A DNA stretch of 64,000 bases from Mobula birostris. Lineage: Eukaryota. Below, piece after piece: positions 3,373 to 40,402 of this stretch. Position 1 is the stretch's first letter, and every line of letters begins with the position of its first letter. The position numbers and the translations under genes are program-made. Location of the stretch: positions 186,032,638-186,096,637 of the forward strand of contig NC_092374.1 of assembly GCF_030028105.1 (NCBI RefSeq), read 5' to 3'. The notes beneath the pieces are model-generated. The model worked only from the letters and a program-made list of their open reading frames with translations, made no database searches and was not told the DNA's origin.

Positions 3373-4082
3373 GATAGGGAAACATTGACAAGGGGACAGA
3401 CAGATGTTGCCTCCCTGGTGCCAGGGTCAAGGATATCATGAATTGCTTAAAGAACCTTCTGGAGGGAGGGAGTCAGGGGCAGCGGCCTCTGATAGTGGTC
3501 CATATTGTAATAGCCAAAGATAGGGATGAAATACCACAGGTATCTCATGCAGCCTGACTGGTTTCATTGCATCCTGGTATGGAAACACCAATGGCCAGGA
3601 ATGGAAAAGCCTATTAAAAAGTTGTTGATATGGGTCAGTCAGTCACAGGAAAAGCCCTATCCACTTTTGAGCACATCTACATGGAGTGCTGTCACAGGAA
3701 AGCATCAAAACTCCAAACCACCCAGACCATGCTTTCCTCTTGCTATTACCATAGGGCAAGAGGTACAGGAGCTTTAAATCCTATGCCACCAGGTTTAGGA
3801 ACAATTATTACCAATCAGCCATCGGCTCAGATAAATCCACTCACCTCAACACTGAACTGATTTCACAAACTATGGGCACAATCTCAAAGACTCTACAGTT
3901 CATGTTCTCAATTTTATTTATGATTTGCATTTGCACAGTTTGTCTTCATTTGCACATTGGCTGTTTGACCATCTTTGTTTCTGTATAGTCTTTCATTGAT
4001 TTTATCGTATTTCTTTGTATCTACTGTGAATACCCACAAGAAATTGAATCTCAGGGTTATGTATGGTGACATTTACATTTAT

Positions 4083-6769: not shown

Positions 6770-7540
6770 AGCCGGCAGAGAGACCGCCGCTGAAAAGGGC
6801 GCCAAACTATCTTCACAAGCAGGGGGAAACCCGCTGGTGGGAAGGGTGTGAATATGCACCCCCGGGGAGGCGAGAACGGGAAGGGTTTAAAGCAGGCTGC
6901 GTGGAGTACTGTTCTGTCTCGGGTGTAAGTGAACGCATCCGTATACGTCACAGCCCCGCCCCCCCCCGCCCAGGGCCGCATACCAAGGGAGTGCTTTCAT
7001 GAGTATTATCATTTTAGATGAGTTTGGTTGCTTGTCAGCGGGGTTTCAGTTTTGTATCTGTTTATTTTGGTTAACAGCTGGTTTCTGGCCCCGCGGTGTG
7101 AGAAGAGTTCGAGGTCCCCGGGCTTTGAAGGGTCCCTGACTTCACTTTAGGTTTGGGGCAGCAGCGGTCCCGGAGTTTAATCGGCTGCCGGAGATGTGGA
7201 CGATCGCTTGCCTTTTGCTGCTGTCCCTGCATGGAGTGTGCAATAACGAAGGTAAGGAGCCTCCATGTCGGCTTTGCAAACGCATGGTCACGTTGAATTG
7301 CATCCGGTCGGCGGCATGACTTTTAAATCCGCCTCACGTTTTCCGCGTGGGATTTCAGCCGGGTGTGTTCATCCCCGACAAATAAGTTCCAAGGGCCCCG
7401 ATTTCAGACTTTCTGTGTGTAACTTCCCTGATAGTTACGTGAGAGGTCTGCTTGTATCTTGTTCAGTGAATCTCGGGGAAAGTTGTCTCGTCTTTCCAGC
7501 GTGTTTGTAAACAGCGAGGAGAAAGCGTCTGACTTCGGAC
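6770..7540 (+). promoter_or_regulatory. CpG-rich promoter/5' region of the Ig-5TM gene
   Basis: Visibly CpG-dense against an AT-rich background, with GC boxes (ccccgccc near 6955-6972). Possible non-coding exon donor gtaagt at 6925 and acceptor ttcactttag at 7150. Confidence 0.55.
7194..7251 (+). CDS. Coding exon 1, signal peptide [19 protein letters not shown]
   Basis: ATG at 7194 in gagATGt, hydrophobic core, donor GAAG|gtaagg, phase 1; lies in a CpG-rich region. Confidence 0.8.
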
Positions 7541-13500: not shown

Positions 13501-16500
13501 GTAGATGAGAGTGTCCTCACAAAATCATTCAGTTTTCCCCAAGCTGAAGCCCTGGATGAAACATGAGATTCAAAATCTGTTGACGGCCAAGAAAATTGCA
13601 AAAGGTCCACATAGGATCTCCAGAAAGCCATCTCACTGGAGAACTGGCAGTTTTGGACTACACAGGAATCAACGAAGAATGCTCAACAGGGCTTGAATAC
13701 TGTCACCGCTTACAAAGTTAAATCAGGTGACATAGGCAAGAACAGGGCTTTGCTTCCAGATGAACTAGTCAGAGTGATCAGCAGCACTGGGGCTCCACAG
13801 GGGACTGTCTTGTCTCCCTTTCTCTTCACCATTTACACCTGGGACTTCAACTACTGTACAGAGTCTTGTCATCTTCAGAAGTTTTCTGATGACTCTGCCA
13901 TAGTTGGATGCATCAGCGAGGGAGATGAGGCTGAGTGCAGGGCTACGGTAGGAAACTTTGTCACATGGTTTGAGCAGAATTATCTGCAGCTCAATGTGAA
14001 AAAGACTAAGGAGTTGGTGGTAGACCTGAGGAAAGCTAAGGTACCGGTGACCCCTGTTTCCATCCAGGGGGTCAGGGTGGACATGGTGGAGGATTACAAA
14101 TACCTGGGGATACGAATTGACAATAAACTGGACTGGTCAAAGAACACTGAGGCTGTCTACAAGAAGGGTCAGAGCCGTCTCTATTTCCTGAGGAAACTGA
14201 GGTCCTTTAACATCTGCCGGACGATGCTGAGGATGTTCTACGAGTCTGTGGTGGCCAGTGCTATCATGTTTGCTGTTGAGTGCTGGGGCAGCAGGCTGAA
14301 GGTAGCAGACACCAACAGAATCAACAAACTCATTCGTAAGGCCAGTGGTGTTGTGGGGATGCAACTGGTTTCTCTGACAGTGGTGTCTGAAAAGAGGATG
14401 CTGTCCAAGTTGCATGCCATCTTGGACAATGTCTCCCATCCACTATATAATGTACTGGTTGGGCACAGGAGTACATTCAGCCAGAGACTCATTCCACCGA
14501 GATGCAGCACAGAGCATCATAGGAAGTCATTCCTGCCTGTGGCCATCAAACTTCACAACTCCTCCCTTGGAGGGTCAGACACCGTGAGCCAATAGGCTGG
14601 TCCTGGACTTATTTCATAATTTACTGGCATAATTTACATATTACTATTTTACTATTTATGGTGTTATTACTATTTATTATTTATGGAGCAACTGTAACGA
14701 AAACCAATTTCCCCTGGGATCAATAAAGTATGACTATGACTACGTCCTTCTAAGCTCACTTTGACCATCAAAACATGGAGGAACCACCACAAACTCCTAC
14801 AGTCCCTGATGATCCTGTGATTCCAATCTCTTGGGATTGATGTGCGAGCAGCCTTCGGGAGTGTGAACCCATGAAAAGCTTCTCGCCAAGTACTAAAGAC
14901 CTGCACTGGAGTGTTTGCGGAGATCTTTAACCTCTGACTTTGTCAGTCTGAGGTACCCACCAGCTTCAAGCAGCCGTCAACTATACCAGTATTTTGCACT
15001 TGGATTTTCAGAAGGCCTTTGACAGGAGGCTGCTAAACAAAATAAGAGCCTTGAGAATTACAGGAAAGATACTAACAGGCACAGAGCATTGACAGATTGG
15101 CAGGAGGTGACGTATGGGAATAAAGGGATCTTTTTAAGTCTGGCTGCCAGTGACTAGTGCTGTTCCAAAGGAGTCTGTGTTGAGACTACTTCTTTTTCGT
15201 TGTATGTTGACAATCTGGATGATGACGTTGATGACGTTGATGACCTTGTGGCCAAGTTTGTGGATGCTACAAAGATAGAACATAGAACTGTACATCACAG
15301 GAACAGGCCAATGTTGGGCCGAAGGAGCTAAAAAGTACCCAAACACTAATCCCCCCTACCGAGACCATGCCAATATCCCTCCATCCTCCTTGTATCCATG
15401 TGCCTAACCAATCATCCCTTAAAAACCTCCAATGTATTTGCCTCTACCACCATACCAGGCAGTGCATTCCAGGCATCCACCACTCTCTGAGTAAAAAGAC
15501 TTGCCCCTCACATCCCCCTTGCACCTTCAATGTCCGCCCTCTGGTATTAGATATTACAACCCTCGAAACAGATACTCCTTGTCCATTCTATCTAAGCCTC
15601 TCCTAATCGTTTAAACCTCAATTTGATCTCCCCTCAGCCTCTGCCACCCAAGAGAAAACAACCCAAGTTTATCCAGCCTCACATGATAGCACATGCCCTC
15701 TAATTGAGGCAGCATCCTGATAAACCTCTTTTGCACCCTCTCCAAAGCCTCAACATCCTTCCTTTCATTCCTTCAACATTCTCTCAACATTCCTTCCAGG
15801 GCTCACCAGGGCCCTGGTGAGACCACACCTGGAGTACTGTGTGCAGTTTTGGTCTCCAAATTTGAGGAAGGACATTCTTGCTATTGAGGGAGTGCAGCGT
15901 AGGTGCACAAGGTTAATTCCCGGGATGGCGGGACTGTCATATGTCGAAAGATTGGAGCAACTGGGCTTGTATATTCTGGAATTTAGAAGGCTGAGAGGGG
16001 ATTTTATTGAAACATATAAGATTATTAAGGGATTGGACATGCTGCAGGCAGGAAGCATGTTTCCACTGATGGGTGAGTCCAGAACCAGAGGCCACAGTTT
16101 AAGAATTAGGGGTAGGCCATTTAGAACGGAGTTGCGGAAAAACTTTTTCACCCAGAGAGTGGTGGATATATGGAATGCTCTGCCCCAGAAGGCTGTGGAG
16201 GCCAAGTCTCTGGATGCTCTCACAAAAGAGATGGATAGAGCTCTTTAAAGATAGTGGAATCAAAGGTTATGGGGATAAGGCAGGAACTGGATACTGATAG
16301 TGGATGATCAGCCATGATCACAGAGAATGGCGGTGCTGGCTCGAAGGGCCGAATGGCCTACTCCTGCAGCTACTGTCTATTGTTTAGTGGGGCGACCAGG
16401 ACGCACTTGGAGTATTGCAACCATTTTGGGCCGCATATCTCGGGAAGAGTCCAGATGAGGTTCACAAGGATGGTTCCAGAACTGAAGGAGTTAACGTCTG

Positions 16501-19500
16501 AGGGGCATTTGGCAGCTTTGAGTCTGTACTCTCTGGAATTTAGAAGAATGCTAGGGGATCTATTTGAAACACTGAATGTTGGAAGGACTAGATAGGGTAA
16601 ATGTGGAGTGGGTAGTTTAGAGGAAGTAGAGAGGCTACAGTGGAACTTAGATAGATTCAGAGAATGGTCAAAGAAATGGCAGATGAAATACTGTGTCGAG
16701 AAGTGTATGGTCCTGCACTTTGGTAGAAGTAGTAAAAGAATGGACTATTTTCTAGATGGAGAGAAATTCAAAAATCCGAAGTGTAAAGTGATTTGGGAGT
16801 CCTCATGCAGGATTCTCTGATGGTTAATTTGCAGGTTGAATTGGTGGTGAGGAAGGTGAATATAGTGTTAGCATTCATCTCAGGAGGACAGGAATATAAA
16901 AGCAAGGATGTAATGCTGCGGATATATAAGGCACATGAGGCCTCACGGACTATTGTGTGCAGCTTTGGGCCCCTTATTTAAGAAAGGATTTGCTGACATA
17001 GGACAGGGTTCAGAGGAGCTTCACAAGAATGATTTTGGCAATTAAATAGTTATCATCTGAGCAGCAATTATATGCTCTGGGCCTGTTCTCACAGGAAATT
17101 AGAAGAATGTGGGAGTGTTCTCATTGAAACTTATTGAATGTTGAAAGAATGTTGAATGTTTTCAGTTCTGGTCACCTCATTATAGGAAGGATGTGGAATC
17201 TATGGGGGGTGCAGAGGAGATTTACCAGGATGTTGCCTGGATTGGAAAACAAGTCTTATGAGGCAAGGTTAGCAGAGCTGGGACTTTTCTCTTTGGAGCA
17301 TAGAAGGATGAGAGGGGAATTGATAGAGGTCTACAATATTATGAGAGGCATAGATAGGGTGGATAGCCAGTACCCGTTTCCCAGGGCATGAATAGCAAAC
17401 ACCAGAGGGCATATGTACAAAGTTAAGGGAGGGAAGTTTAGGGGAGATATCAGGGGTATGTTTTTTACACAGAGGGTTGTGGGTGCCTGGAATGACTTGC
17501 CAGGGATGGTGGTGGAGGCTAAAACATTAGGGGTATTTAAGAACCTCTTGGACAGGCACGTGGATGAAAGAAAAATAGAGGGTTACGGTGTAGTGTGGGT
17601 TTAGTATGTTTCTTTTTTAAGGAATACATGGGTCGGCACAACATCGAGGGCTGAAGGGCTTGTACTGTGCTGTAGTATTCTAGTGTCTATATAGAGTGGG
17701 TGTGAAGAGAATGTTTCCTACAGTGGAGGAGTTTTGGACAAGAGAGTACAGCTTCAAACTAGAGGGACTCCATCTGAAAGCCCTTAACTCTGGGTGGAGT
17801 CATCGGACTCCGTTTTTTTAGCAGGCTTTCTTATTTTTATGAGGTTGAGTTGCTCGCTCAACGCTCAACCCAGCATAGGTGGAAAGCGTGCAAGGGAGCT
17901 GGCTGGATTCGAACTCGGGAGCCTTCACTCCGAAGTCCGGCATTGATGCCACTACACCACCAGCCGGCCGTTTGGAATAGAGCTGAGGAGGAATTTCTTT
18001 AGCCAGAGGGTGCTAAATCTGTGGAATTCATTGACACAGATGGCTGAGGAGGCCAGTTCTTTGGATGTACTTAAGGCAGAGATTCATAGGTTCTCGATTA
18101 GTCAGGATGTGAAAGTTTATGAGGAGAAGGCAGGAGAATGGGATTAAGAGGGAATGGGATCAACCATGATGAAATGGCGGATCAGGCGTGATGGGCCAAA
18201 TGGCCTAATTCTGCTCTTATGTCTTGTGGTCTCAGCTGAGGTTGATAGGTTGGCATGAAGAAGGGTCGTCAAATGTGTTTACATTTGGCAGAGGTAGACT
18301 GGGCAAACTGAATTATTAAGTTGTATTTTATTTCATCCTCGCAGCCAAAGCTACAATCCATTTGGTTTAAGTCTCATGCACCCAAGCTGCCTTCTCCTTT
18401 GCAATATTTTGACAGTTTAGCCTAGATTGAGTTAACATTGGAGAGTTAATTTTGTGTAAATTGGCTACCAGAACCAGGTTCTAAACTGTGGTGAATGGTC
18501 TTGTATCTGCTAATGTAATAGGTGCTCAATTTTGGTCATACAACCATAAGACACTGGAGCAAAATTAGGCCATTTAGCCCATTGAGTCTGATCTGCCATT
18601 TCATCACAGCAGATTTAAGATCCCTCCCAACCCATTTTTCTGCTTTCTCTCCGTAACCTTCGACACCCTTACTAATCAAGAACCCATCAACCTTCGCTTG
18701 AAATATACTCAATGACTTGGCCTCCAAAGCCATTTCATCGCAATGAATTCCACAGATTCTCCACTCTGGCTGAAGAAATCCCTCTTCATTTCTGAGGCTG
18801 CGGCTCTCCGTGTCCACTCCATCTTTGCCTTTCAATATTGAATGTGTTTCAGTAAGGTTCTCTTCCTCCCCATGCTGCCCCCATGACCACCTTCTTCTAA
18901 ACTCCAGCAAGTAGAGGCCTGGACCCAACAAACGCTCCTCGTACGCTGACCCTCTGTCACCCGGTTCCAGTGTTTCACCACTGTCTTCCCAGATTTAACA
19001 AGTTACATTTTCTTTTCTTGCCCTCATCAGTCAACAGAGAAGATGCCGTTGCAATGCTTGGTTCATCAGTTTTACTGGATTCGGAAGTCGAAGTTAACCC
19101 GCAGATGCAAGAGATCATTTGGACATTCATGAGCAGCCACAACAGCCCTGTCACCATTTTACATCACATCCCGAATTACAAGAAGTGGGCAGAGCCCAGT
19201 GAACAGTTCAAGTTGCGCCTGGGTTTTATTCTTTCCAATGGTTCTTTGATGATAAATGGATTAAAAGTCGAGGACCAAGGAGATTACAGTTTGGAGGTAG
19301 ATGACCGTGAACTGAAAATAATACATTTGTCCCTCTTCGGTGAGTACATGAATAACTGATTCAAGGTTGAAGTTTATTTAACACGTGTACAGTACTGTGC
19401 AAAAGTCTTAGGCACATAAATGTATACAGTAGCCAGGGTGCCTAAGACTTTGTGCAGTTTGATATATTATGTCTTTCCAGTTGCCAAATACTATTAGCTC

Positions 19501-22500
19501 AGTAGTATTAAGTGTTACTTGGTAACTGGAAAGACATAATATTCAGTACTCGGGCACCCTAGCTATATATATGTACTTCAGACTTTGGCACAATATTATA
19601 CATGTGGGTTTATCAACATTGGGACTGGCTCTTTAGACTATTATCTTCCTCTCAGTCAGAGACATAGATGACAACTGAAACAGGCCTTTCAGCCCACGAA
19701 TATTTTTGTTAGCCCTGACATAGCCCTTGTTATTGCTGTTCCTCACTTTGCCCTGACACCTTATTAATTGGTCATCCGTCCCATTCCTGGTACGGCTGAG
19801 GGCATATCCCAGCTTGGAACGTGAGCCACACAGACACGTGGCTGAAAGGCAAGCTCTCCCTTTCCCACACATTTGATGAAAGGTGGGAGCCACAGCAGCC
19901 GTAGTAGTTTGACGCTATGCCATCGGAGTTCAGAGTTCAATTCCGGCGCTGTCTGTGAATGTTTTTACGTCCTTCCTGTGAACACGCGGGTTTCTTCACA
20001 GTGCTCCGGTTTCCTCCCACTGTCCAAAGGCGTACTGGTTAGTGGGTTAACTGGTGATTGTAAATTGTCCCACCATTAGGCTTGGGTTAAACAGGTGGGT
20101 TGCTGGGCAGTGTGGCTCGTTGGGCTGGAAGGGTTGGTTCTGCACCGTATCCCGAAATAAATGTCATGCAGTGAGGTTTCATTGCAAGTCATCAGTTCAT
20201 AATATGTGGCATTGACTAACTGGACTCTGGAAACTCACACTCGTTCCTCAAAAACACTTTATTTACTTGTGCACAGGGAGAACTGCATGACCCCTGTCAC
20301 CGCACTGTTCTGAAGTCTGAACAGAGAAAATGCCACTGTCAGAACAAATTGAATTGCTTTACAGATATTGACCAGCTGGTACATGTTCAAGTTCCTGACT
20401 TGCAAAATTAATTGTCATTCAGGATAGTTGTTGCCTGATCCTGGAATCCTTATCTGATCTCCCTGTGCCAAATAGCTCCAGTCCCCTGCTGTGCTATGTT
20501 CTCCAAAGGCCTTCCCTAGTGACCTATCTTGGCTGCACTGACTGCACACTATCTGCATTCTGTGCTTGCCAGGACATTATCGTGACCCTTGCCTTGCTGC
20601 CCCTTCCACAGTAGCACAGTGCTTATCACATTCGCCTTACAGCGCCAGTTGTCACTGACTGCAGCTCAATTCCCGTCACCGTCCGTAGGCATTTTGTATG
20701 TTCTCCCTGTGACCGTGCGTGTTTCCTCACACATTCCGAACTGTACGGATGGTGAAAAAGGATCTAGTGCTTTCCTGGCGTATGTGATGAATAAACTGTT
20801 CTCAGACTCCCAGCCGGCTGTAGGTATCGATTTTAACCAATGTTTCAATGACAAGGTCTGCCATCTGCATCGGGAATGATGTCTGGGCATGTCTAGTCTG
20901 GTGGTATTTATACCCCTGTTGTCCCTCTCTCCTGAATGGTTAGTCCTCATCCAATCCGGTTTCCACTGAAACCCATATCAAGGAGCACAGGCAATGTATC
21001 CGTTTGGGTTACCTGGAGAAATTGGCAGTGGCAGAACATTGTGTTCACAATGGCCATAGGATTGACTTCGACGGCACAAAACTGTGCCACACCAATGGCT
21101 TTTCGGACCACCTAGTGAAGGAAGCATTTGAAATAAAACTAGAGGTAAAGAATTTTATCCAAGGCAAAGGTCTTCCTCTAGCTAAGAACTGGAATTTAGT
21201 TGTAAGCAAGGTGGGACGGCAGAAACCTGATTGGATGAGGACTAACCATTCAGGAGAGGTGGAATACAGGGGTGTAAATACCACTGGACTAGACATGCCC
21301 AGGCATCGTTCCTGATGAAGATGGCAGAGTTTGTCATCGGAACGTCAGTTAAATTCAATACCTGCACCTGGCTTGAAACCCAAGAGTTTATTCATGTACG
21401 GTTAGGGTTAGTGAGTTGTGTTTATGCTATGTTAGCGTGTCAACACGTCTGGACTGCACAATCACAAAACAACACATTTAACGATACGTTTTTGAAATAC
21501 AAATAAAGCTAGTCTTTCTGCCCTTTAGATAACCTGTTGGAAGCTAAGATATTGACCAGCTCCTCCTTCCCTGCTTCTGTTATCTGGCTCATCTGCAACG
21601 TCAGTGGAGATCCTCAGAAGTATCAATGGTGGAAAAATGGAGCGGAAATCTCCCAGTTTCACCAACTTATCGATGGCAATCGGACTCTAATGATCATGAA
21701 TGCCTCAAGACATGACTGTGGAATTTATACCTGCGCGGCAACCAATCCAGTCAGCTTCATCCAGGCTAACCACACCCTATTCATTTCTGGTGAGTTTCGT
21801 TTGTAAATCTTATTCTGAGAGTAAATTTGACATCATCGTTTAGTGGCCAGCTTTGGAAATCAATCTGTCAGCACTGGAAGTGTTAAAGTTCATAGAAATT
21901 TTGCAATCGGCAAAGAGGACATTGGGTCCTTCTTGTCTGTGCTACCTCTGAGTAATCCACCTACTCCCTTTTCCTGCTCCACAATTAAATCTGTCTCGAT
22001 TACAACAATTGTTGAGGCAAAATTCGACAACATACCCTGACCAGCTTGGATTCTTTCGCTAATCATTGTCCTTCTACATCCTCCACTTCTCAACCTCTCT
22101 GGTTTCAAATAACTCTATCAGATCTTCTCACGTCCTCCCCTATTCCACAGAGAATGGCTTCAGTCTCTTCAGTCCGCCCACACGGCTCTCAATCAAGGGC
22201 TTACCCATAGCCCTCTATTTTTCTAAGCTCCATGTACCTATCCAGGAGTCTGTTAAAAGACCCTATCGTTTTCACCTCCACCACCGCTGCCGGCAGCCCA
22301 TTCCACACACTCGCCACTCTCTGCGTAAAAACCTTACACCGCCATCTCCTCTGTACCTACTTCCAAGCACCTTAAAACTGTGTCCTCTCATGATATCCAT
22401 TTCAGTTCTGGGGAAAAAGCCTCTGACTATCCACACAATCAGTGCCTCTCATTATCTTGTACACCTCTATCAGGTCACCTCTCATCCTCTGTCACTCCAA

Positions 22501-25500
22501 ATAGAAAAGGCCGAATTCACTCAACCTATTCACATAAAGCATGCTCCCCAATCCAGGCAACATCCTTGTAAATCTCCTCTGCACCCTTTCTATGGTTTCC
22601 ACATCCGTCCTGTAGTGAGGCGACCAGAATTGAGCACAGTCATCCAAGTGGGGTCTGACCAGGGTCCTGTATAGCTGTAACATTACCTCTCGGCTCCTAA
22701 ACTCAGTCCCATGATTGATGAAGGCCAATGCAGCGTATGCCTTAACCACAGAGTCAACCTGTGTCGCAGCTTTGAATGTCCTATGGACTCGGACCCCAGG
22801 ATCTCTCTAATCCTCCACACTGCCAAGAGCCTTACCATTAATGCTATATTCTGCCATCATATTTGACCTACCAAGATGTACCACCTCACACTTATCTGGG
22901 TTGGACTCCATCTGCCACTTCTCAGCCCAGTTTTGCATCCTATCAATGTCCCACTGTAATCTCTGACAGCCCTCCACACTATCCACAATACCCCCAACCT
23001 TTGCGTCATTAGCAAATTTACTAACTCATCCCTCCACTTCCTCATCTAGGTCATTTATAAAAATCGCAATGAGTGGGGGTCCCAGAACAGATCCCTGAGG
23101 CACACCACTGGTAACTGACCTCCATGCAGAATATGACCCATTTACAACCACTCTTTGCCTTCTGTGGGCAAGCCAGTTCTAGATCCACAAAGCAAGTTTC
23201 CCTTGGACCCCATGCCTCTTTACTTTCTCAATAAGCCTTGCATGGGGTACCTTATCAAATGCCTTGCTGAAATTCATATACACTACATCTACCGCTCTAC
23301 CATCATCAATATGTTTAGTCACATCCTCAAAAAATTCGATCAGGCTTGTGAGGCACGACCTGATTTGACAAAGTCATGCTGACTATTCCTAATCATATTA
23401 TGCCTCTCCAAATGTTCATAAATCCTACCTGTCAGGATTTCGTCCATCAACTTACCAACCACTGAATTAAGACTCACTGGTCTATAATTTCCTGGGCTAT
23501 CTCTACTCCCTTTCTTGAATAAGGGAACAACATCCGCAACCCTGCAATCTTCCGGAACCTCTCCTGTCCTCACTGATGATGCAAAGATCATTGCCAGAGG
23601 CTCAGCGATCTCCTCCCTCGCTTCACACAGTAGCCTAGTGTATATCCCATCTGATCCCGGTGATTTATCCAACCTGATGCTTTCCAAACACTCCAGCACA
23701 TCCTCTTCCTTAATATCTACATTTTTAGTCCACTGCAAGTCAACCCTACAATGGCCAAGCTCCTTTTCAGTAGTGAATGCTGAAGCAAAGTATTCATTAA
23801 GTACCTTTGCTTCCTCCTCCGGTTCCATACACACTTTTCCACTGTCACACTTCTCCCACATCTTATCCTCTTGATCATCACATACTTGTAGAATGCGTTG
23901 GGGTTTTCCTTAATCCTGTCTGCCAAGGCCTTCTCCTGGCCCCTTCTGGCTCTCCTAATTTCATTCTTAAGCTCCTTCCTGCTAGCATAATTTTCCAGAT
24001 CTCTATCATTACCTAGTTTTTTGAACATTTCGTAAGCCCTTCTTTTCTCCTTGACTAGATTTATTACAGCCTTTGTACACCACGGTTTCTGTACCTTGCC
24101 ATCCTTTCCTGTCTCATTGGAACTTACCTATGCAGAACCCCACGCAAATATCCCCTGAACATTTGCCACATTTCTTCCCTACGTTTCCCTGAGAAGATCT
24201 GTTGCCAATTTATGCTTCCAAGTACCTGCCTGATAGCCTCATATTTCCCCTTACTCCAATTAAACGTTTCCCTGACTTGTCTGTTCCCGTCCCTCTCCAA
24301 TGCTATGGTAAAGGAGATAGAATTGTGATCTCTGTCTCCAAAATGCTCTCCCACTGAGAGACCCAACACCTGACCAGGTTCATTTCCCAATACCAGATTA
24401 AGTACAGCCTCTCCTCTTGTACGCTCATCTACATATTGTGACAAGAAACCTTCCTCAGCACACCTAACAAACTCCACCCCATCTAAACCCCTCACTCTAG
24501 GGAGATGCCAATCAATATTTGGGAAATTAAAATCTCCCACAACAACCCTGTTATTATTACACCCCTGCAGAATCTGTCTCCATATCTGCTCCTCACAAAC
24601 TCTCCCCAATAGGCTTAGCAAACCTCCCTGCCAGGATATTGGTCCCCCTGGGATTCACGTGCAACCTGTCCTTTTTGTACAGGTCACACCTGCTCAAAAA
24701 GGTCCCAATGATCCAGAAATCTGAATCCCTGCCCCCTGCTTCAATCCCTCAGCCACACATTTATCCTCCATCTGATTCTATTCCTGTACTCACTGTCACG
24801 TGGCACAGGCAGTAATCCCGAGATTACCATCTTTGTGGTCCTGCTTCTCAGCTTCCTTCCTAACTCCCTATAGTCTGTTTTCAGAACCTCCTTCCTTTTC
24901 CTGCCTATGTCGTTGGTACCGATATGTACCACGACCTCTGGCTCTTCTCTTACCCACTTCAGGATATCGTGGATGCGATCAGGAACATCCTACACCCTGG
25001 CACCTGTTAGGCAAACTACCATCCGCGTTTCTTTCCTGCATCCACAGAATCACCTGTCTGATCCCCTAACAATGGAGTCCCCTATCAATACTGCCAGCCT
25101 CTTCCTTTCCCTACCCTTCTGAGCCACAGGGCCAGACTCTGTGTCAGAGGCATGACCACTGTTGCTTCCCGCAGGTAGGCCATCTCCCCCAACAGTATTC
25201 AAACAGGAGTACTTATTGTTAAGGGAGACAGCCACTGGGGTACTCTCTAGCATCTGCGTGTTGCCCTTCCCTCTCCTGATTGTTGTCCACTTGCCTGTCT
25301 CCCGTGGCCCTGGTGTGACCACCTGCTTATATCTCCTCTCTGTCACATCCTCACTCTCCCTGACCAGACGAAGGTCATTGAGCTGCATGTCCAGTTCCCT
25401 AATGCAGTCCTAAAGGAGCTGTAGCTCGATGCACTTGGCACAGATATGGCCGTCCGGGAGGCTGGGAGTCTCCAGGACCTCCCACATCTGACACCGAGCA

Positions 25501-28500
25501 CAGAAAACCAGCCTCACACACATACTTTCTGTCTGTATTCTATGCAGATAACCTACATCACCTTGACCCATTATCGCCGAAGCCCCGTTGAGCCAAAGCC
25601 TTCCTACTCTAGCTCCCTGTACTCTGACACCCACTTCTCCGATGACCGCTGTATAAATGTCTTCTTTTTAAACTCATCGCACTGTTCTCACTGGCTGACG
25701 TCCACGCAATTGCGCAGTCGTGCCCCGTTCAAAAGGCTGAAGACATTTTTTTTCCTCCTGATTCAGTGGACAATGAGCAAAGAGTAGTGGTTAGAAATTG
25801 AAATAATGTATTGTCATCTACCATAATCCTTGGACCGTTCTATTTTGCTGATGAGTAGCCACTTTCTGTGGATGGTAGCCATGGTAACAGTTGGTAATCT
25901 GTTTCCCTAAAAATAACCACACTAAGCCATGATATGTGCTCCTTTTAATTTGTTATTTATTTATGAGATACAGTGTGGAATATGCCCTTCGAGCCGTGCC
26001 GCCCAGCAATCCCTCGATTTAGTTCTTGCCTCATCATGGGACAATTTGCAACGATCAATTGACCTCCCAGCCAGTATGCCTTTGGACTGTGGGAGGAAAC
26101 CCTTGCAGTCAAGGGGAGAATGTACAAACTCTTTACTGGCTGCAGTGGGAATTGAACCTGGGACGCTGGTACTGTAAAGCGTTGTGCTAACCACTACACT
26201 ACCGTGTGGTCCCATGGTAACGTAGCTCTTCTACGACTTGCATCTTAATCCCTGGTCAGGTGACTTGCTGAGGAGCCGGGGTTAGCAACGTGTCTTCTGG
26301 GCCTGGGGAAAGAATATCCATCACGCCCCAAGTTTTGCATCTTCTGTCAGTTTGGAATGTTACTCAAAGTTGTTCATTCTTGGCTGGCACAGCAAGTTGC
26401 TGTCTAGTAAGTGCTCCTGAGAGGGCATGTAGAGCACGTTGGTACAGGCGTGAAGTCACAGGCTGGTGAAACGGGGCAGGGGCTGGCGCTTTCCCATCCC
26501 TGCAGGAGATGAAGGGAACAGTAGGCTTGTTGCAATTCATAGCAAATCCCTTTGTCATCTCTGTGTAACATTGTTCAAAGTTATTTTTTAATTGCAGGTT
26601 TTCATCAAGAGGACGTTGCAATAATTGTTCTGTCGGTGATCTCTTCAGTGCTTTCTATTTTGCAGTGCTCGCAGTGCTTGCTGCTGAAGACAGACAGAGG
26701 TATTTATCACTGTGTCCCAAATAAATGAAAGGAATCCTGGTTATTTTCTCGAGTTAATTTTTGTTCTTTAAGAATTGTCTCAAATAAGTGGCTGCCCTGA
26801 TTAACCGATGGCCCAGTTAACTGGAATCCACTGCACGTACTGTAGAGCTCACCATATACTAAGTGGAGTTTCATTTTCTTGCAGGCCTTTACAGGAAAGT
26901 AAAGAAATACATTCGAATTTATGAAAAACCTTTACATAAAGACTCTCGAACAGCCAATGTGCAAAAGAAAACAAATTGTGCAAATAATTTAAATAAATAA
27001 TATTGAGAACATGAGTGGTAGAGTCCTTAAAAGTGAGTCTGTAGGTTGTGGAATCAGTTTAGAGTTGAGACGAGTGAGTGAGGGGGCTAAGCACACAAAC
27101 TGTGCTGATGGTAATTGTGGAGGAGATGTCGTTGCCAATCTGAACTGACTGGGATCTGCAAGTGAGGAAATCAAGGAGGGATTGATTACAATTGTTGACT
27201 TACACAGGGAGGTATTGGGGCATTCAAATTTCAGGGCTGGAATTTGAAGGGTCACACATAGCCTCTCTCTCTCTCCCCCTCTCTCACGCATGCCCTTCTC
27301 TCGTGCACAGCACTCGCACACTCAGCTCCCTCCCTCCTTCTCTGATACGCATAAGCTCTTCAAATCCCAGTTGAGCAGCACTTCTTGGAGAGTAACGGAG
27401 GGTCCCGATAGATGCTGGACCAACCAGCAAAACCCCAATGAATTAAAAGCACCAGGGGAAGGAGAGGTGTCCCTCGGACCACATGCTGGAAGATCCCTCA
27501 AAACTGGTTCATCAGTTGCCAGTGGGCTCCCTGGACAAACACCACTTGTTCACTGCTTAGTGTCTCTGCATTCAGGCATTTTGGCCTGCAGCCCCATTTG
27601 GGGAACAGTTTCCACCCTGGACTAGAACACTGTCTAGTGCCCGAGAGCATCCGGGTACAGTGATGACCCAGTCCTCGGTCTCGCAGCAGAGTTCAGGGTG
27701 AAACTGCAACTTCTGGGCTGCTGTAGGTTAATGCTACCCCAGCTCCCATAATCATTGGGATGATGCACACATGATTCACATTGCGTCCTTTCCTCCTCCA
27801 CTGGGCTCACACACAGGGAGACTGCATTCTATCTGTCTTTTCGGTATTCAGCCCATGGATAATCAGATGGCATACTACGAGATGAGCTGTTTTCTGGTGC
27901 TTTTTGCTCCTCTCTGCTGTCTCCTCTTTGCTGCCAGTGTCCGTCAGCTCTGAGACTCCTCCAGTGCTCTGGTGGCTACTCCACCCCCGGGCTGGTATTT
28001 GAGTTGAGTGCCACCAGCAGCCTGACTCATCCCGAGTCCCACCTCCGTTACCGCGAGCTCGCTCTCTGATTCCTGTGTCCAGCCATTTATGTAGGTCTCA
28101 CATTTGGACTGTTCTGGATTTTTCTTGATTGCAGCTGTGAGGCGGGTCAAATGCTTGAGGCAGTTCCTGGGTATCTGTACCTTCATGACCTACGTCACGA
28201 CCCTCATGACCTGTGTCGCAACCCTCACCAAACTTATCCCCACGAAAGGTACGTGTGTGATGTTCTGCATGTGCATTGTTCTGATCAGTGTGGGATTCAG
28301 CACACCCCTCCACCTTCACGTCCAGCACCCAAGGACAGGCAGGGTGGGTATCTGGACTCCAGAAGGCATGTGAAGGAACTGGTAAATTAAAGGCATAATT
28401 ATAAAGCTTGGAAAACAGTTGTTGGTTCAGTGCGGGGAGCCAGTGTGTAGGGGTAACCTGCAGGGGCTGAAGTTGGTGGGATTTGGGTCATGGTGCTGTA

Positions 28501-31500
28501 CAGGAATGTGTGGTGGGCCTTTTGGAGGAAGGAGGTGGAATCTTTCGCAAGGTGATTTCCCAGGATGCTGCCTGGACTAGAGCTGGTCTCCTAGGACAGG
28601 TTGAGCGAGCTAGGTCTTTCTCATCAGTGGAAAGGGGGATGAGGGGTGACTTGAGAGAATTATACAAGGTAAGAAGCGTAGATCGAGTAAATAGCCAGAG
28701 ACTTCTTCCCCAGGGCTGAAACAAGGAGGCACAATTTTAAGATAGGTATAGAAGAGATGTTAGAGGCAGTTTTGTTTAATACACAGAGATTGGTGGGTGT
28801 GTGGAATACCCTGCCAGGGGTGGTGAAAGAGGTAGATACATTAGGGGCATATGAGAAACTCTTGGGCACTTGGAGGAGAGAAAAAATGCAAAGCTATGTA
28901 GGATGAGAGGAAAATGGAGAGTGATGAAGGAGGGATGGGTTCGATTGATCTTAGACTAGGTTAAGAGGTGGACACAACACCATCTGACAAGGGCTCTACT
29001 GTTCTGTAGAGTGCTATGCAACTGGTCCTTGGATTGACTGGGCTGATGATGTGAAATGCGACTTTACCAAGTTGGTCAAGTTTGACCGGAGAGGTGACAT
29101 TGTGAACTAACCCCCCGCCTTGTCTTTCTCCCCGGGCCTCCTGCCCCATGATCCTCTCATAATCCCTTTGCCTATCACCTGTCCAGTTCTTGGCTCCATC
29201 CCTCCCCCTCCTGTCTTCTCCTATCATTTCGGATCTCCACCTCCCCCTCCCACTTTCAAATCTCTTACTAACTCTACCTTCAGTTAGTCCTGACCAAGGG
29301 ACTCGGCCTGAAGCGTCGACTGTACCTCTTCCTAGAGATGCTGCCTGGCCTGCTGCATTACCAGCAACTTTGATGTGTGTTGGTTGGGGCATCTGGGACC
29401 AGGAGACCTGGGGCCAGGGTCAATTGCATAGTACTGTTCTGTTTGTTTTAATATTAGGAATCGCTTTTCCCCAGAGTGAAAAGAAGTAATGTTCTGTCTG
29501 GAAATTCAATGGGGCACGAGGGCATCAGTCACTTTTGCTTGGCCGGTGATGTCATTCCCTGTATGACAATTTCCGGTAGGGGAACTGCAAGTTAATTGGA
29601 CCATGCTGTCCTGGGAGTTCCCACCACTGGGCAGTCCCAGGGCCATTCTCTTTCATCACTGCAGCTCCAAACTCTAGGATGCCTTCCAGATGTTAGTCAC
29701 TGAACTTCATCCACGGGGACTTCAGAGTGTCCTGGCTTTTCTCCACCCACACCTCTGCACACCTGCTTGAATTGTTCACGTAAACATGTTTGCAACATTC
29801 AAGGTCAGGCAGCGTCTCTGTAGTGAGAGGTGGACAGTGAAATGCTGTCTACCCCCCCCCCCCACACTGTTTGCAACGACGTACCTCTTTGCACCAGTGG
29901 TGAACCCAGTGATGATTCTCCCATCATCTGAGTCGGTCTGGAGAGCCGGTGGTTCAGGTCTGTCACCGTCAGGTGGAGTGAGGTTAGAAATCTGTGTTTC
30001 CTTTTGCAGAGATGGGTGAAGGGCTGAGCTGAAGAAAGTGAACTGTGTGGAGGGGCGGAGACCAGGAGAGCCTCTCGAGTGTCTCACCCTGGTCTGGTCT
30101 ACCCACAGCTGGTGAGAGTGCAGTTCAGGGGAACAAATGCTAAGGGGTGTAACGAAAAGGAATAAAGAGAAATAAAAGAAAGAATGGCACTTCTGAACAA
30201 TCTATCACTTCTATAGATAAGATGAAGGAAATTCCTTAGTGATAATTTAGTCAATAGGCTACATAATTAAAACAATTACATCACATGGGTAATACTTGTT
30301 AAAAAGTACAAATTTTATAAAAAGTATTATTTTTAAAAAAGTGGTTTCCAACAAGAGGTTTCACCCTCAGGTGAAGCAGGTGAAAAGCAGATCCAGCATT
30401 GCCCCCTCTACAGGAACAGTATATAAAGCACAGTTCTGGGGAAGTTACAGAATGGAAATCCTGCGTCTTGTTGTTTAATTTCCCGTTTATTACTGAGTGA
30501 ACCGCTGACCATTGCTGTGGGGTCTTTGCTCCCCAGGTTCGGACCCTGTCGTAGTAGCGGTTTATTGCACAGTGTCCCTTCAGCTTCTGACTTTGGGTCT
30601 GCTGCTCGTTGTCCAGAGGCTGGACTGTTTCAGAAAGAGGGCAGGTAAGAGACTGGGTCATTCATTGTACAACCTCTCAGTGAAGGAAAGGAATGGAGGG
30701 TTATGGGCTGAGTGCAGGTCGGTGGGACTAGATGAGAGTAAGAGTTCGGCACAGACTAGAAGGGCCAGGATGGCCTATTTCCGTGCTGCAATTGTTATAT
30801 AGTTATATGGTTAATGCACTGTAATTGTCACACTTTGTATTTAACAGCTATTTGGGAAAGGACCGTAGCTGGACTTCATGTCATCGTGATCATCACTTCA
30901 GTCGTTTTTTTAGCATTATTAAGTCATCCAGACTGTGAGTTTGCCTAGAGCTCTTCATCATTGTTTATGGCAATGCATGGTTTTGATCATTTTCTTTGTT
31001 ATATACACACACACACACAGTTGGTTTATTGATCACTGCAGAGTGGTTCTCTGCTGCTTCCTGCTTCCTCCTCTCTCCTTTCCCCAACCACGATGCCCCT
31101 CTCCCTGACCCCTTCCCACTCTCAGTCCACAGTAGAGACCCATTTCAGATTCAGGTTTATCATCATTCACAAATGGCATGAAATCTGTTTAACTTTGTTT
31201 CCAGCAGCAATACATAAACTTACTACTGTACTGTCTCAAAGTGTTAGGCACCCAAGCAAGACTGTACTTAGGAGACAGAAGGGATGAACTTGGAAAAGTT
31301 AATAATTATGAAAGGCAGAGATGAGCTGGACAGTCTTTTCCCCAGGGTCGGGAAGTTGAAAACACGAGGGCATAGATTTAGGTTGAGAGGGGAAAGATCT
31401 GAAACAGACCTGAAGGACAGTTTCTTTTAAAACAGAGTGTGATCAGGGTATGGAACAATTTAACAGAGGAACAGGTTGAGACAGGTACAATACCAGAAGC

Positions 31501-33295
31501 TCTGGGAAGTGTTTAACACCTGGACAGGTACATGGAGGGACGGGCCATGCACCATCCTGTCTTTGCCATTGCTCTGTGAGTTTGCTGTGGAAGGTGCATT
31601 GGATGTTTATTGTATTGTGGATGTGGGCACTTGGTGTCAGTTTACTCAGTTTCATCATGTTGCACATTTTCAGATCAAGGCTGTGAAAGCAGCTTTATTG
31701 TCTGGATGGTATTCTTTGGAGCAGTGATCGTGGGTGCTGTGGTCTTTCTCTTCAACTTCATGGTCGAACACCGTAAGTAAATACCAAACCATTCAGCAGC
31801 TGCTGTATCGCTTCCCAGAGTAAAGACCTTCCCCCGATCTCACAGCCGCTTCAGCTCCTACGAGGGTTTCCCGGGCTCTGCTTGAGTTCCCTCACGGAGC
31901 TGCTGGCCGTGCAGGTGGGGTTTTGGACTCCTGCTGGGACGTAGAAGTGAACAACTTCCCAGCTGAACTCCAGTGATACCCCACTGGGCTCCGTGGAGAC
32001 TGATGGAGAGGTCTGACAGAGCGCAGAATAGGCCCCTCGAGCCGTGCCGTCCAGCAAACCTCAATTTAATCCGAACTTAATCACAGGACAGTTTGCAGTG
32101 GTACGTCTCTGGACTGTGGGAGGAAACCCACACGGCCATGGCGAGAGCGTACAAACTCCTTACAGGCAGTGGCGGGAATTGGACCCAGGTTGCTGGTACA
32201 GTAAAGCATTGTGCTGACCACTACATTACTGCGAAATCTGTAAAGGATCGATTTCTTAGATGGAATCAAAGATGCAAATAAAGGCATCAACACTGAAGAA
32301 ACAGCACCAGATATTTTGTTAAAATAGATTCCTACTGTTTGTCAAAATTTCATTTTATGTGTTTAGAAATTGACTAATTTACACCTAAAAATTAATACAT
32401 TGTGTGTTCATAATGCTGCTCTCTCTTGGACACTGATTCACCCAGCCCAGAGAATCTGGGGTACATACTGTGACCTCACTGTAGCACAGGGGGGCTCACC
32501 GGATCCAGAACCCATGTCTTACAGAAATTGCCCCATAACTTAAGAAAGAATTTTTTTCAGGTTTGCAATAATGAAATGTTTACAATAGTACAAGATACAG
32601 TGTGTGTTCTGAGTTAATTATGGTTGTGTTAGAGTAAATGTTGGAAATTATCATTAAAATGAAAGGACAAGGTGTTAAGGTTTATGTTGAGAATTCAGGA
32701 GAATGGTTTTGAGAGGGAAAATAAGTCAGCCATGATGGAATAGTGGAGCAGACTCGATGGGCCAAATGGTCTAGTTCTGCCCCTATGTCTTATTGTTTTA
32801 GAGGATGTGTAGGCAGGGCGATGTGATGTGGGTAGCTACAGGAAAGAGATGTTCCTGCTTTACATAAAGATTAGTTTACAAACAGCTCTTGGGAACTGAA
32901 GTCTTGTGTAACACCGGGTCTATCTGTATACAGTTACTCTTGAAGTTATAGAACTACTTTGTCTATTCACATTCCCCAGTTAACTTGTAGAGATTGCCTG
33001 TTATTGAAATATTCTCTGTGAGTTGGTACCTGGATTCCTCAGTCTGCCGCAGTCTCTGTAGGCATGTCCTTCTCTGCCTGTCACCCTTCCCCTTGGTGTG
33101 ATGCTTCTGTTGATTGACTGGGATTCACCTACTTCCTGTAACAAATGCACTTTTGTCATTTTAGTATCCTGCAGAAAGGAAAATTCTGAAATGGACCCAC
33201 CAGATCCCACAGCTTCTGATGAACTTCTGATGTCTGATTTAAAAAGCGTACATCAGTCTTCATTTTCAGACGACATTCCCAGTTCGAAGCCTTAA
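7194..33295 (+). CDS. Spliced gene model, 9 coding exons, 422 aa: signal peptide-IgV-IgC2-5TM-acidic tail (CD2/CEACAM-like ectodomain on a CD47-like pentaspan module)
   Basis: join(7194..7251,19031..19339,21529..21789,26598..26699,28135..28248,30537..30644,30848..30934,31674..31772,33165..33295). All introns are GT-AG and phase 1, and the frame is open throughout (1269 nt). Basic loops follow TM1 (KTDRAVRRVK) and TM3 (RLDCFRKR), consistent with N-out/C-in topology. The last exon is less certain. Confidence 0.8.
7637..9017. mobile_element. Two adjacent CR1 fragments in opposite orientation (7637-8052 minus; 8053-9017 plus)
   Basis: ORF 7700..8053 (minus) and ORFs 7912..8652 / 8646..8939 (plus, [16 protein letters not shown]). 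Confidence 0.9.
9165..11705 (+). mobile_element. Penelope-like retroelement (degenerate RT + GIY-YIG endonuclease + terminal repeat)
   Basis: [40 protein letters not shown] (RT); [27 protein letters not shown] (GIY-YIG). Confidence 0.92.
11712..12585 (+). mobile_element. CR1 LINE 3' fragment (second subfamily)
   Basis: ORFs 11739..11954, 12037..12297, 12257..12508. Confidence 0.9.
12950..14742 (+). mobile_element. Rex1/Babar-type non-LTR retrotransposon, internally deleted; RT C-terminal half is an open ~300-aa frame
   Basis: [44 protein letters not shown]; 3' end gggatcaataaag(tatgac)n; APE remnants upstream. Confidence 0.88.
15790..18232 (+). mobile_element. Cluster of CR1 3' fragments
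   Basis: ORFs 15817..16248, 16608..16820, 17134..17391, 17413..17604 and repeated CR1 tails. Confidence 0.85.
17768..17969 (-). mobile_element. tRNA-derived SINE inserted in a CR1 fragment
   Basis: Minus-strand head GGCCGGCTGGTGGTGTAGTGG (A box)...CTTCGGA...GAGTTCGAATCC (B box). Confidence 0.65.
18545..18960 (-). mobile_element. CR1 3' fragment just upstream of the IgV exon
   Basis: ORF 18536..18931. Confidence 0.8.
19031..19339 (+). CDS. Exon 2, V-set Ig domain without cysteines (CD2/SLAM/CEACAM N-domain type)
   Basis: Acceptor ttttcttttcttgccctcatcag|, donor TTCG|gtgagt. Motifs [34 protein letters not shown]. Confidence 0.92.
19880..20160 (+). mobile_element. Abundant SINE-like repeat (further copies ~20600-20760 +, 25960-26215 -, 32030-32232 -, 50375-50560 -, 60870-61140 +)
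   Basis: Shared core gttcaattcc...ctgtaagga gtttgtacgttct...ccggtttcctcccaca..caaag recurs in the window. Confidence 0.65.
20787..21395. mobile_element. Second-family Penelope-like fragment: GIY-YIG C-terminus with inverted terminal repeats (20787-20963 minus, 21222-21395 plus)
   Basis: [24 protein letters not shown]; the two ~175-nt arms align as reverse complements. Confidence 0.75.
21529..21789 (+). CDS. Exon 3, C2/I-set Ig domain
   Basis: Acceptor tctttctgccctttag|, donor TCTG|gtgagt. [34 protein letters not shown]; four N-glycosylation sequons (NVS, NRT, NAS, NHT). Confidence 0.92.
22170..25740 (-). mobile_element. Near full-length degenerate CR1 LINE: ORF1 (zinc finger + SGNH esterase) and ORF2 (APE + RT), antisense in intron 3
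   Basis: [32 protein letters not shown] (ORF1); VVVGDFNFP (APE); [20 protein letters not shown] (RT). Confidence 0.92.
26598..26699 (+). CDS. Exon 4, TM1 ([34 protein letters not shown])
   Basis: Acceptor ttattttttaattgcag|, donor AGAG|gtattt; 102 nt, phase 1-1; hydrophobic stretch. Confidence 0.82.
28135..28248 (+). CDS. Exon 5, TM2 ([38 protein letters not shown])
   Basis: Acceptor tttttcttgattgcag|, donor AAAG|gtacgt; 114 nt, phase 1-1. Confidence 0.82.
29120..29385 (+). mobile_element. Penelope terminal-repeat fragment
   Basis: Matches the shared repeat; degenerate hammerhead at 29286-29321. Confidence 0.8.
30537..30644 (+). CDS. Exon 6, TM3 ([36 protein letters not shown])
   Basis: Acceptor tctttgctccccag|, donor GCAG|gtaaga; 108 nt, phase 1-1. 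Confidence 0.87.
30848..30934 (+). CDS. Exon 7, TM4 ([29 protein letters not shown])
   Basis: Acceptor ctttgtatttaacag|, donor GACT|gtgagt; 87 nt, phase 1-1. Confidence 0.87.
31674..31772 (+). CDS. Exon 8, TM5 ([33 protein letters not shown])
   Basis: Acceptor ttgcacattttcag|, donor CACC|gtaagt; 99 nt, phase 1-1. Confidence 0.88.
33165..33295 (+). CDS. Putative terminal exon, acidic cytoplasmic tail ([43 protein letters not shown])
   Basis: Acceptor cttttgtcattttag| is phase-compatible and the other two frames stop early. An alternative phase-2 acceptor exists at 33174/33175. Confidence 0.55.
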
Positions 33296-37419: not shown

Positions 37420-40402
37420 TAGTAAGGTGAAAAGTAAAAGTGGCAGGCAGGCAAATCCAGGGCAAAAATCTAAAAGGGCCACTTTTCAACATAATTGTAT
37501 AAGGGCTAAGAGTGTTGTAAAAGCAAGCCTGAAGGCTTTGAGTGTCAATGCAAGGAGCATTCGTAACAAGGTGGATGAATTGAATATGCAGATAGTTAGT
37601 AATGAATATGATACAGTTGGGATCACAGAGACATGGCTCCAGGGTGACCAGGGATGGGAGCTCAACATTCAGGGATATTCAATATTCAGGAGGGATAGAC
37701 ATGAAAGAAAAGGAGGTGGGGTAGCATTGCTGGTTAGAGAGGAGATTAACGCAATAGACAGGAAGGACACTAGCTGGGAGGATGTGGAATCGATATGGGT
37801 AGAGCTGCATAACACTAAGGGGCAGAAAACGCTGGTCGGAGTTGTGTACAGGCCACTTAACAGTAGTAGTGAGGTTGGGGATGGCATTAAACTGGAAATT
37901 AGAAATGTGTGCAATAAAGGAACAGCAGTTATAATGGGAGACTTCAATCTACATATAGATTGGGTGAACCAAATTGGTAAGGGTGCTGAGGAAGAGGATT
38001 TCTTGGAATGTATGCGGGATGGTTTTTTGAACTAACATGTCGAGGAACCAACCAGAGAGCAGGCCATTCTAAACTGGGTATTGAGCAATGAGGAAAGGTT
38101 AGTTAGGCCCCTTGAGTAAGAGTGACCATAATATGGTGGAATACTTCATTAAGATGGAGAGTGACATAGTTAATTCAGAAACAAAGGTTCTGAACAAAAA
38201 AGGGTAACTTTGAAGGTATGAGACAGGAATTCCTAAGATAGACTGGCAAATGATACTTAAAGGGTTGACGGTGGATATGCAATGGCAAGCATTTAAAGAT
38301 CGCATGGATGAACTACAACAATTGTTCATCCCAGTTTGGTAAAAGAATAAACCAGGGAAGGTAGTGCACCCGTGGCTGACAAGAGAAATTAGGGATAGTA
38401 TCAATTCCAAAGAAGAAACCTACAAATTAGCCAGAAAAAGCGGCACACCTGGGGACTGGGAGAAATTCAGAGTCCAGCAGACTAGGACAAAGGGCTTAAT
38501 TAGGAAAGGAAAAAAAGATTATGAGAGAAATCTGGCAGGGAACATAAAAACTGACTGTAAAAGCTTTTATAGACGTGAAAAGAAAAGGATTGGTTAAGAC
38601 AAATGTAGGTCCCTTACAGTCAGAAACAGGTGAATTGATCATGGGGAACAAGGACATGGCAGGCCAATTGAAAAACTACTTTGGTTCTGTCTTCACTAAG
38701 GAGGACATAAATAATCTTCCGGAAATAGTAGGAGACCAAGGGTCTAGTGAGATGGAGGAACTGAGGGAAATACATGTTAGTAAGGAAGTGGTGTTAGGTA
38801 AATTGAAGGGATTGAAGGCAGATAAATCCCCAGGGCCAGATGGTCTGCATCCCAGAGTGCTTAAGGAAGTAGCTCAAGAAATAGTGTATGCATTAGTGAT
38901 AATTTTTCAAAACTCTTTAGATTCTGGATTAGTTCCTGAGGATTGGAGGGTGGCTAATGTAACCCGCTTTTTAAAAAAGGAGGGAGAGAGAAACCGGGGA
39001 ATTATAGACCGGTAAGCCTGACATCGGTGGTGGGGAAAATGCTAGAGTCAGTTATCAAAGATGTGATAACAGCATATTTGGAAAGCGGTGAAATCATCAG
39101 ACAAAGTCAGCATGGATTTTTGAAAGGAAAATCATGTCTGACGAATCTCATAGAATTTTTTGAGGATGTAACTAGTAGAGTGGATAGGGGAGAACCAGTG
39201 GATGTTGTATATTTGGATTTTCAAAAGGCTTTTGACAAAGTCCCACACAGGAGATTAGTGTGCAAACTTAAAGCACACGGTATCGGGGGTATGGTATTGA
39301 TGTGGATAGAGAATTGGTTGGCAGACAGGAAGCAAAGAGTGGGAATAAACGGGACCTTTTCAGAATGGCAGGCAGTGACTATTGGGGTACCGCAAGGCTC
39401 AGTGCTGGGACCCCAGTTGTTTACAATATATATTAATGACTTAGATGAGGGAATTAAATACAGCATCTCCAAGTTTGCGGATGACACGAAACTGGGTGGC
39501 AGTGTTAGCTGTGAAGAGGATGCTAAGAGGATGCAGAGTGACTTGGACAGGTTGGGTGAGTGGGCAAATATATGGCAGATGCAATTTAATGTGGATAAAT
39601 GTGAGGTTATCCACCTTGGTGGCAAGAACAGGAAAACAGATTCTTATTTGAATGGTGGTCGATTAGGAAAAGGGGAGGTGCAATGAGACCTGGGTGTCAT
39701 TGTACACCAGTCATTGAAAGTGGGCATGCAGGTACAGCAGGCAGTGAAAAAGGCGAATGGTATGCTGGCATTTATAGCGAGAGGATTCGAGTACAGGAGC
39801 AGGGAGGTACTACTGCAGTTGTACAAGGCCTTGGTGAGACCACACCTGAAGTATTGTGTGCAGTTCTTGTCCCCTAATCTGAGGAAAGACATCCTTGCCA
39901 TAGAGAGAGTACAAAGAAGGTTCAGCAGATTGATTCCTGGGATGGCAGGACTTTCATATGATGAAAGACTGGATCGACTAGGCTTATACTCGCTGGAATT
40001 TAGAAGATTGAGGGGGGATCTGATTGAAACGTATAAAATCCTAAAGGGATTGGACAGGCTAGATGCAGGGAGATTGTTCCCGATGTTGGGCAAGTCCAGA
40101 ACAAGGGGTCACAGTTTAAGGATAAAGGGGAAGCCTTTTAGGACCGAGATTAGGAAAAACTTCTTCACGCAGAGAGTGGTGAATCTGTGGAATTCCCTGC
40201 CACAGGAAACAGTTGAGGCCAGTTCATTGGCTATATTTAAGAGGGAGTTAGATATGGCCCTTGTGGCTATGGGGATCAGGGGGTATGGAGAGAAGGCTGG
40301 GGCGGGGTTCTGAGTTGGATGACCAGCCATGATCATAATAAATGGCGATGCAGGCTCGAAGGGCCGAATGGCCTACTCCTGCACCTATTTTCTATGTTTC
40401 TA
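37420..40402 (+). mobile_element. CR1 LINE, near-complete ORF2 (APE + RT) with several stops/frameshifts
   Basis: VNARSIRNK, GITETWL, MGDFNL (APE); [24 protein letters not shown]; intact 3' tail. Confidence 0.95.

Follow-up and report, generated by a model that had tools for sequence, protein, structure and literature searches.

In CD47, an immunoglobulin (Ig) ectodomain is attached to a membrane domain of five passes, and the protein ends in a short cytoplasmic tail that varies by splicing. Several small exons encode its membrane domain, and a cysteine is located in the outer loop between membrane helices 4 and 5. Poxviruses encode CD47-like proteins that consist of an Ig domain and five membrane helices, and these intronless viral genes are recognisably related to CD47. 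Receptors of the CD2/SLAM and CEACAM/HEPACAM types begin with an N-terminal V domain without a disulfide, followed by a C2 domain. They are encoded by phase 1-1 exons in tandem gene clusters, occur as many isoforms, and are anchored by a single membrane helix, with tyrosine-based motifs in the tail. Here we analyzed a stretch of 64,000 nucleotides (nt) of Mobula birostris (NCBI RefSeq assembly GCF_030028105.1, contig NC_092374.1, positions 186,032,638 to 186,096,637, forward strand), which is referred to as the window and whose numbering is used below. It contains a nine-exon gene, referred to as the window gene, that encodes a signal peptide, an IgV domain, an IgC2 domain, five membrane helices (TM1 to TM5, on exons 4 to 8), and a tail. 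The family to which this gene belongs shares with CD47 the features given for it above. It likewise shares the domain order, exon phase, gene clustering, and multiplicity of isoforms with the CD2/SLAM and CEACAM/HEPACAM types, whereas its members have five helices and the tail of the window gene lacks tyrosine.

Exons 4 to 8 probably encode the five-pass anchor of a surface protein that belongs to an elasmobranch family and resembles CD47 in architecture. The initial annotation described five consecutive symmetric phase-1 exons of 102, 114, 108, 87, and 99 nt, each encoding one TM helix, and the coordinates, borders, reading frame, and RNA joints all agree with this description. Each of the five exons is preceded by AG, followed by GT, and contains one hydrophobic stretch (5/5). 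When joined, they form a single open frame, which is the frame that places all flanking introns in phase 1. RNA evidence was taken from transcript-like contigs of four public runs, all from one study. Exact GT-AG joints were found at all four internal TM introns in every run, and the transcripts mostly joined all five helix exons.

AlphaFold was used with a 30-sequence alignment to model the membrane domain of P0151, the closest paralogue that is intact and 92% identical in this region (predicted local distance difference test, 78.5; predicted template modelling score, 0.75). The modeled helices comprise residues 8-36, 40-72, 80-107, 109-137, and 146-179, and the exons span residues 6-38, 39-77, 78-112, 113-142, and 143-174. 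Thus, three of the four internal introns are placed within inter-helix loops, and the TM3/TM4 intron lies approximately four residues inside helix 4. Basic residues are concentrated in loops 1 and 3 and past helix 5, a clustering that fits a predicted topology in which the N-terminus is outside and the C-terminus inside. The Gly-Cys motif of the outer loop between TM4 and TM5 is conserved in the family alignment (A2); in CD47, this loop and the Ig domain are linked by a long-range disulfide. Pfam scans of the five TM exons one by one gave no meaningful match.

The window gene belongs to a multigene family that has so far been found only in sharks and rays. BLASTP searches with the five-helix domain matched ray members from Mobula, Hemitrygon, Hypanus, Pristis, and Amblyraja with E-values of 1e-104 to 1e-8, and the similarity extended across all five helices. 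Profile and iterative searches identified shark members, with the five helices covered, in Rhincodon, Cetorhinus, Carcharodon, Mustelus, Scyliorhinus, Hemiscyllium, Pristiophorus, Heptranchias, and Chiloscyllium. No members were found outside elasmobranchs by word-indexed searches, which are insensitive, and a profile search with alignment A2 returned two more family members only and no CD47. Several members are named 'HEPACAM-like' by NCBI, and our literature search returned no description of an elasmobranch five-pass Ig family.

We compared the plan of the window gene with those at three genomic loci, from Pristis (sawfish), Amblyraja (skate), and Rhincodon (whale shark), on which the proteins were mapped exactly. 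The TM1 to TM5 exons measured 114, 102, 123, 84, and 99 nt in Pristis; 117, 90, 105, 87, and 93 nt in Amblyraja; and 117, 147, 96, 96, and 101 nt in Rhincodon. No extra exon was present in the genes of Mobula, Pristis, and Rhincodon. In all four species, every intron from the signal exon to the TM4/TM5 boundary was in phase 1. The TM2/TM3 intron cut the codon of the same conserved outer-loop glycine in all four genes, and in the window gene this split codon is opened by the final base of exon 5. As the same plan is present in sawfish, skate, whale shark, and Mobula, the arrangement of one helix per phase-1 exon is, on the evidence of these gene structures, older than the shark-ray split.

Two kinds of variation on this plan were observed. 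The Amblyraja radiata gene contains an extra 54-nt phase 1-1 exon between TM1 and TM2 (L001, 34863-34916), which lengthens cytoplasmic loop 1. The ectodomain also varies within the family (P0176, P0167, P0188, P0175, and P0179), with V-V, V-V-C2, lone V, or lone C2 arrangements produced by duplication or skipping of Ig exons; the single-IgV forms, of approximately 327 amino acids (aa), resemble CD47 in size and layout.

The exons of the window gene are summarized in Table 1. Annotated ray proteins were reached by searching a representative protein library with the IgV exon, followed by a region search. One of them, P0153 (XP_072115177.1), is annotated as Mobula birostris "isoform X2", consists of 393 aa, and maps residue for residue on the window; its paralogues have 422 and 426 aa. 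Candidates for the signal-peptide exon from a naive scan were false, and exon 1 was placed by mapping P0153. Exon 2 scored 31.3 bits with the Pfam V-set model and 20.2 bits with Receptor_2B4, slightly below the cut-off of 21. The SLAM model was matched weakly in two relatives (E 0.014 to 0.035). All eight introns of the gene are in phase 1, so the symmetry is not confined to the membrane block. The intact frame, canonical splice sites, and spliced contigs in four runs rule out a pseudogene or an annotation artefact.

Table 1 Exons of the window gene, with positions in the window.
Exon	Content	Position	Strand	Details
1	Start codon and signal peptide	7194..7251	+	58 coding nt, phase 1 end; ATG at 7194, GT donor past 7251; exact P0153 mapping
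2	IgV without canonical cysteine pair, CD2/SLAM-like	19031..19339	+	309 nt, phase 1-1; AG/GT; exact P0153 match
3	IgC2	21529..21789	+	261 nt, phase 1-1; Pfam Ig_3 44.7 bits, I-set 42.5 bits
4	Membrane helix 1 and beginning of cytoplasmic loop 1	26598..26699	+	102 nt, phase 1-1; RNA joint 26699/28135 in 4/4 runs
5	Membrane helix 2	28135..28248	+	114 nt, phase 1-1; RNA joint 28248/30537 in 4/4 runs
6	Membrane helix 3 and basic cytoplasmic loop 3	30537..30644	+	108 nt, phase 1-1; RNA joint 30644/30848 in 4/4 runs
7	Membrane helix 4; cassette exon without a place in annotated isoform X2	30848..30934	+	87 nt, phase 1-1
8	Outer loop 4 with conserved Cys, and membrane helix 5	31674..31772	+	99 nt, phase 1-1; RNA joint 30934/31674 in 4/4 runs
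9	Tyrosine-free cytoplasmic tail	33165..33295	+	Stop TAA 33293-33295; exact match to P0153 residues 352-393; AG acceptor before 33165

Side observations were made on the relatives of P0153. P0154, a Mobula birostris paralogue, differs from the window gene by one residue in the membrane region and has a different N-terminus; the sequences suggest a very recent duplication or gene conversion inside the cluster. The orthologues P0004, P0152, and P0155, from Mobula hypostoma, Hemitrygon, and Hypanus, have tails that run on for approximately 30-40 residues beyond the ends of the Mobula birostris models P0151 and P0153, suggesting an alternative donor within the last exon.

Single helix exons are skipped in annotated isoforms of the family. 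Isoform X2 (P0153) lacks the 29 codons of the TM4 exon, and the codon created at the junction encodes Asp. A TM4-skip joint with the same structure (30644/31674) was detected in RNA run X3. This joint was seen in one contig with 27 nt on the shorter side, and thus the RNA support for TM4 skipping is weak by itself. Annotated isoforms without TM4 were found for the window gene, a Mobula paralogue, the Hemitrygon orthologue, and Amblyraja. TM1 is absent from annotated isoforms of Scyliorhinus and Mustelus and from P0026, TM2 from an isoform of one Pristis gene, and TM3 from P0010. Ig exons are skipped as well, leaving a single IgV on five helices (approximately 322-332 aa), and many family genes have several alternative tails.

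The initial annotation also held that symmetric exons allow in-frame skipping, and that skipping an even number of helices would keep the tail cytoplasmic. The first part is borne out by the annotated isoforms and the one RNA joint. The second is not, as single helices are lost, and no isoform without two helices was seen among the aligned annotated isoforms. An isoform minus one helix would have to flip its downstream topology or fail to insert a helix. Single-helix-skip isoforms are therefore more likely to be non-functional or regulatory by-products than alternative receptors. Separately, P0157 (a Mobula paralogue) and P0152 (the Hemitrygon orthologue) contain 4 to 5 added residues where the TM4 exon begins (acceptor 30848 in the window), immediately ahead of helix 4, which looks like the use of another acceptor site.

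The exon plan led to the earlier proposal of homology to CD47, with the statement that human CD47 encodes its five TMs in five consecutive phase-1 exons of similar size (exons 3-7). According to a CD47 review, the human gene has 13 exons; exons 1-7 are constant and encode the ectodomain, with IgV on exon 2, and the membrane domain, and the tails are derived from exons 8-13. Five constant exons accordingly lie between the IgV and tail exons. This layout is consistent with five exons for the five CD47 helices; the review gives exon counts, and phases and positions are not stated in it.

Homology to CD47 was not supported by the searches. The Pfam model of the CD47 membrane domain (PF04549) gave no match at E up to 1 in 10 full-length members. 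When 30 membrane domains were scanned in isolation at E up to 10, it was not among the 25 most frequent of the 57 families matched, so that a lone weak match among the others is possible; the two sets, 40 sequences in total, partly overlap. The CD47-type IgV model (PF08204) scored 13.6 to 15.7 bits, below its cut-off of 21, and these matches fell on IgC2 rather than IgV. Family profiles of 16 and 30 sequences were compared with 177,635 distinct solved-chain sequences, and CD47 was absent at E up to 10. Fold searches were performed for two AlphaFold models with Foldseek, against both PDB and AlphaFold Swiss-Prot, and with VIA-align against 48,161 representative chains. For the better model, a second look at the Foldseek top 1000 by VIA-align and a search of the ESM Atlas were added. 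CD47 appeared in none of the lists from the seven fold searches, in which all matches were at background level. These negatives do not prove convergence, as the sequences of membrane helices change rapidly and helical bundles are poorly discriminated by fold searches. As the evidence stands, the parallel with CD47 is an architectural one, and the membrane module cannot be shown to belong to the CD47 family.

Other differences from CD47 are also evident. The window gene has the same order of Ig ectodomain, five membrane helices, and short cytoplasmic tail, but its main form has two Ig domains, and its V domain is CD2/SLAM-like without the cysteine pair. CD47 is a single conserved gene, whereas the family is a large tandem multigene set limited to sharks and rays, for which no match to the CD47 membrane model, V-set model, or fold was found. 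Splicing in the family also takes out membrane helices, in contrast to CD47, for which we know of no report of splicing of this kind.

A possible but rather unlikely explanation is that the five-helix cassette and the CD47 membrane domain share ancestry, the five phase-1 exons having been moved or kept as a block behind different Ig ectodomains while their sequences diverged past detection. The two agree in overall architecture and in the number of helices, the window gene has one helix per phase-1 exon, and the constant part of human CD47 comprises a number of exons that agrees with such a block. The conserved cysteine of the TM4-TM5 outer loop, the alternative tails common in the elasmobranch family, and the isoforms with one IgV and five helices, near CD47 in size, also point in this direction. 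However, PF04549 is absent from the matches listed for the 40 family sequences, CD47 is absent from the solved-chain profile searches and from the Foldseek and VIA-align lists of both models, and the V domain resembles CD2/SLAM rather than CD47. In addition, phase 1 is gene-wide here and is the norm among genes of the Ig superfamily, and phase by itself is therefore weak evidence of kinship.

An extension of this idea is tentative and, in our judgment, still on the unlikely side. CD47 might be the lone bony-vertebrate survivor of an old Ig group that had a five-exon, five-helix cassette, and sharks and rays might have kept this group and expanded it behind CD2/SLAM-like ectodomains. Phase-1 exons would then have let the cassette shuffle and single helices be spliced out, changing the topology.

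It is very unlikely, in our view, that the cassette arose within this lineage from an ordinary one-pass Ig-superfamily gene whose only membrane exon, in phase 1, was duplicated repeatedly; the likeness to CD47 would then be convergent. The TM exons are all symmetric (phase 1-1) and similar in size (87 to 114 nt), and the number of exons varies in the family, as seen in the extra skate exon and in the Ig exons duplicated in some members. However, hhalign comparisons between the five exon sub-alignments gave probabilities of at most 5.5% and detected no internal repeat, although exon-versus-exon profile comparison of hydrophobic helices of approximately 30 residues has little power either way. 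It is hardly probable that the module was formed by joining a four-helix bundle of the MS4A/Fc-epsilon-RI-beta, sarcospan, or tetraspanin type to the one-pass anchor present originally (TM1), an origin suggested by background-level structural matches only.

We therefore return to the interpretation of exons 4 to 8 as the anchor of an elasmobranch family with an architectural likeness to CD47. The gene is built wholly of phase-1 symmetric modules, with each Ig domain and each helix on its own exon. Because all modules are symmetric in phase 1, the reading frame is kept when an Ig or helix exon is lost, gained, or duplicated. As tyrosine motifs are absent from the tail, any signalling would proceed via lateral partners of the helix bundle, as proposed for CD47.

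Mobile elements and repeats were observed around the exons. Frames of long interspersed nuclear element (LINE)-type reverse transcriptase and endonuclease were found in introns and flanks, at 3969-5056, 13615-14592, and 38548-40310 on the forward strand and at 23343-24654 on the reverse strand; the last lies within the intron between IgC2 and TM1, opposite to the gene. Downstream of the gene, open frames at 44581-45470 on the forward strand match DUF4371, a transposase-related domain. Two intronic stretches, 29087-29484 and 30679-30877, had a very high contig depth in each of the four RNA runs (tens of thousands), and these most likely represent expressed repeat copies from other sites in the genome.

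The observation made in the window is well supported and extends to an ancient, family-wide gene plan in which helix exons are indeed skipped. CD47 is an important target for drugs; to our knowledge, no relatives of its five-pass membrane domain are known and the function of this domain is not settled. Another large, naturally occurring family in which Ig proteins are anchored by five helices provides a comparison set for CD47, whether the two are related or convergent. Its conserved polar residues, loop cysteine, and bundle partners could reveal what a five-helix anchor does. The plan of one helix per exon, together with annotated and RNA-supported skipping of single helices, offers a natural test case for how cells handle a helix count and topology changed by splicing.
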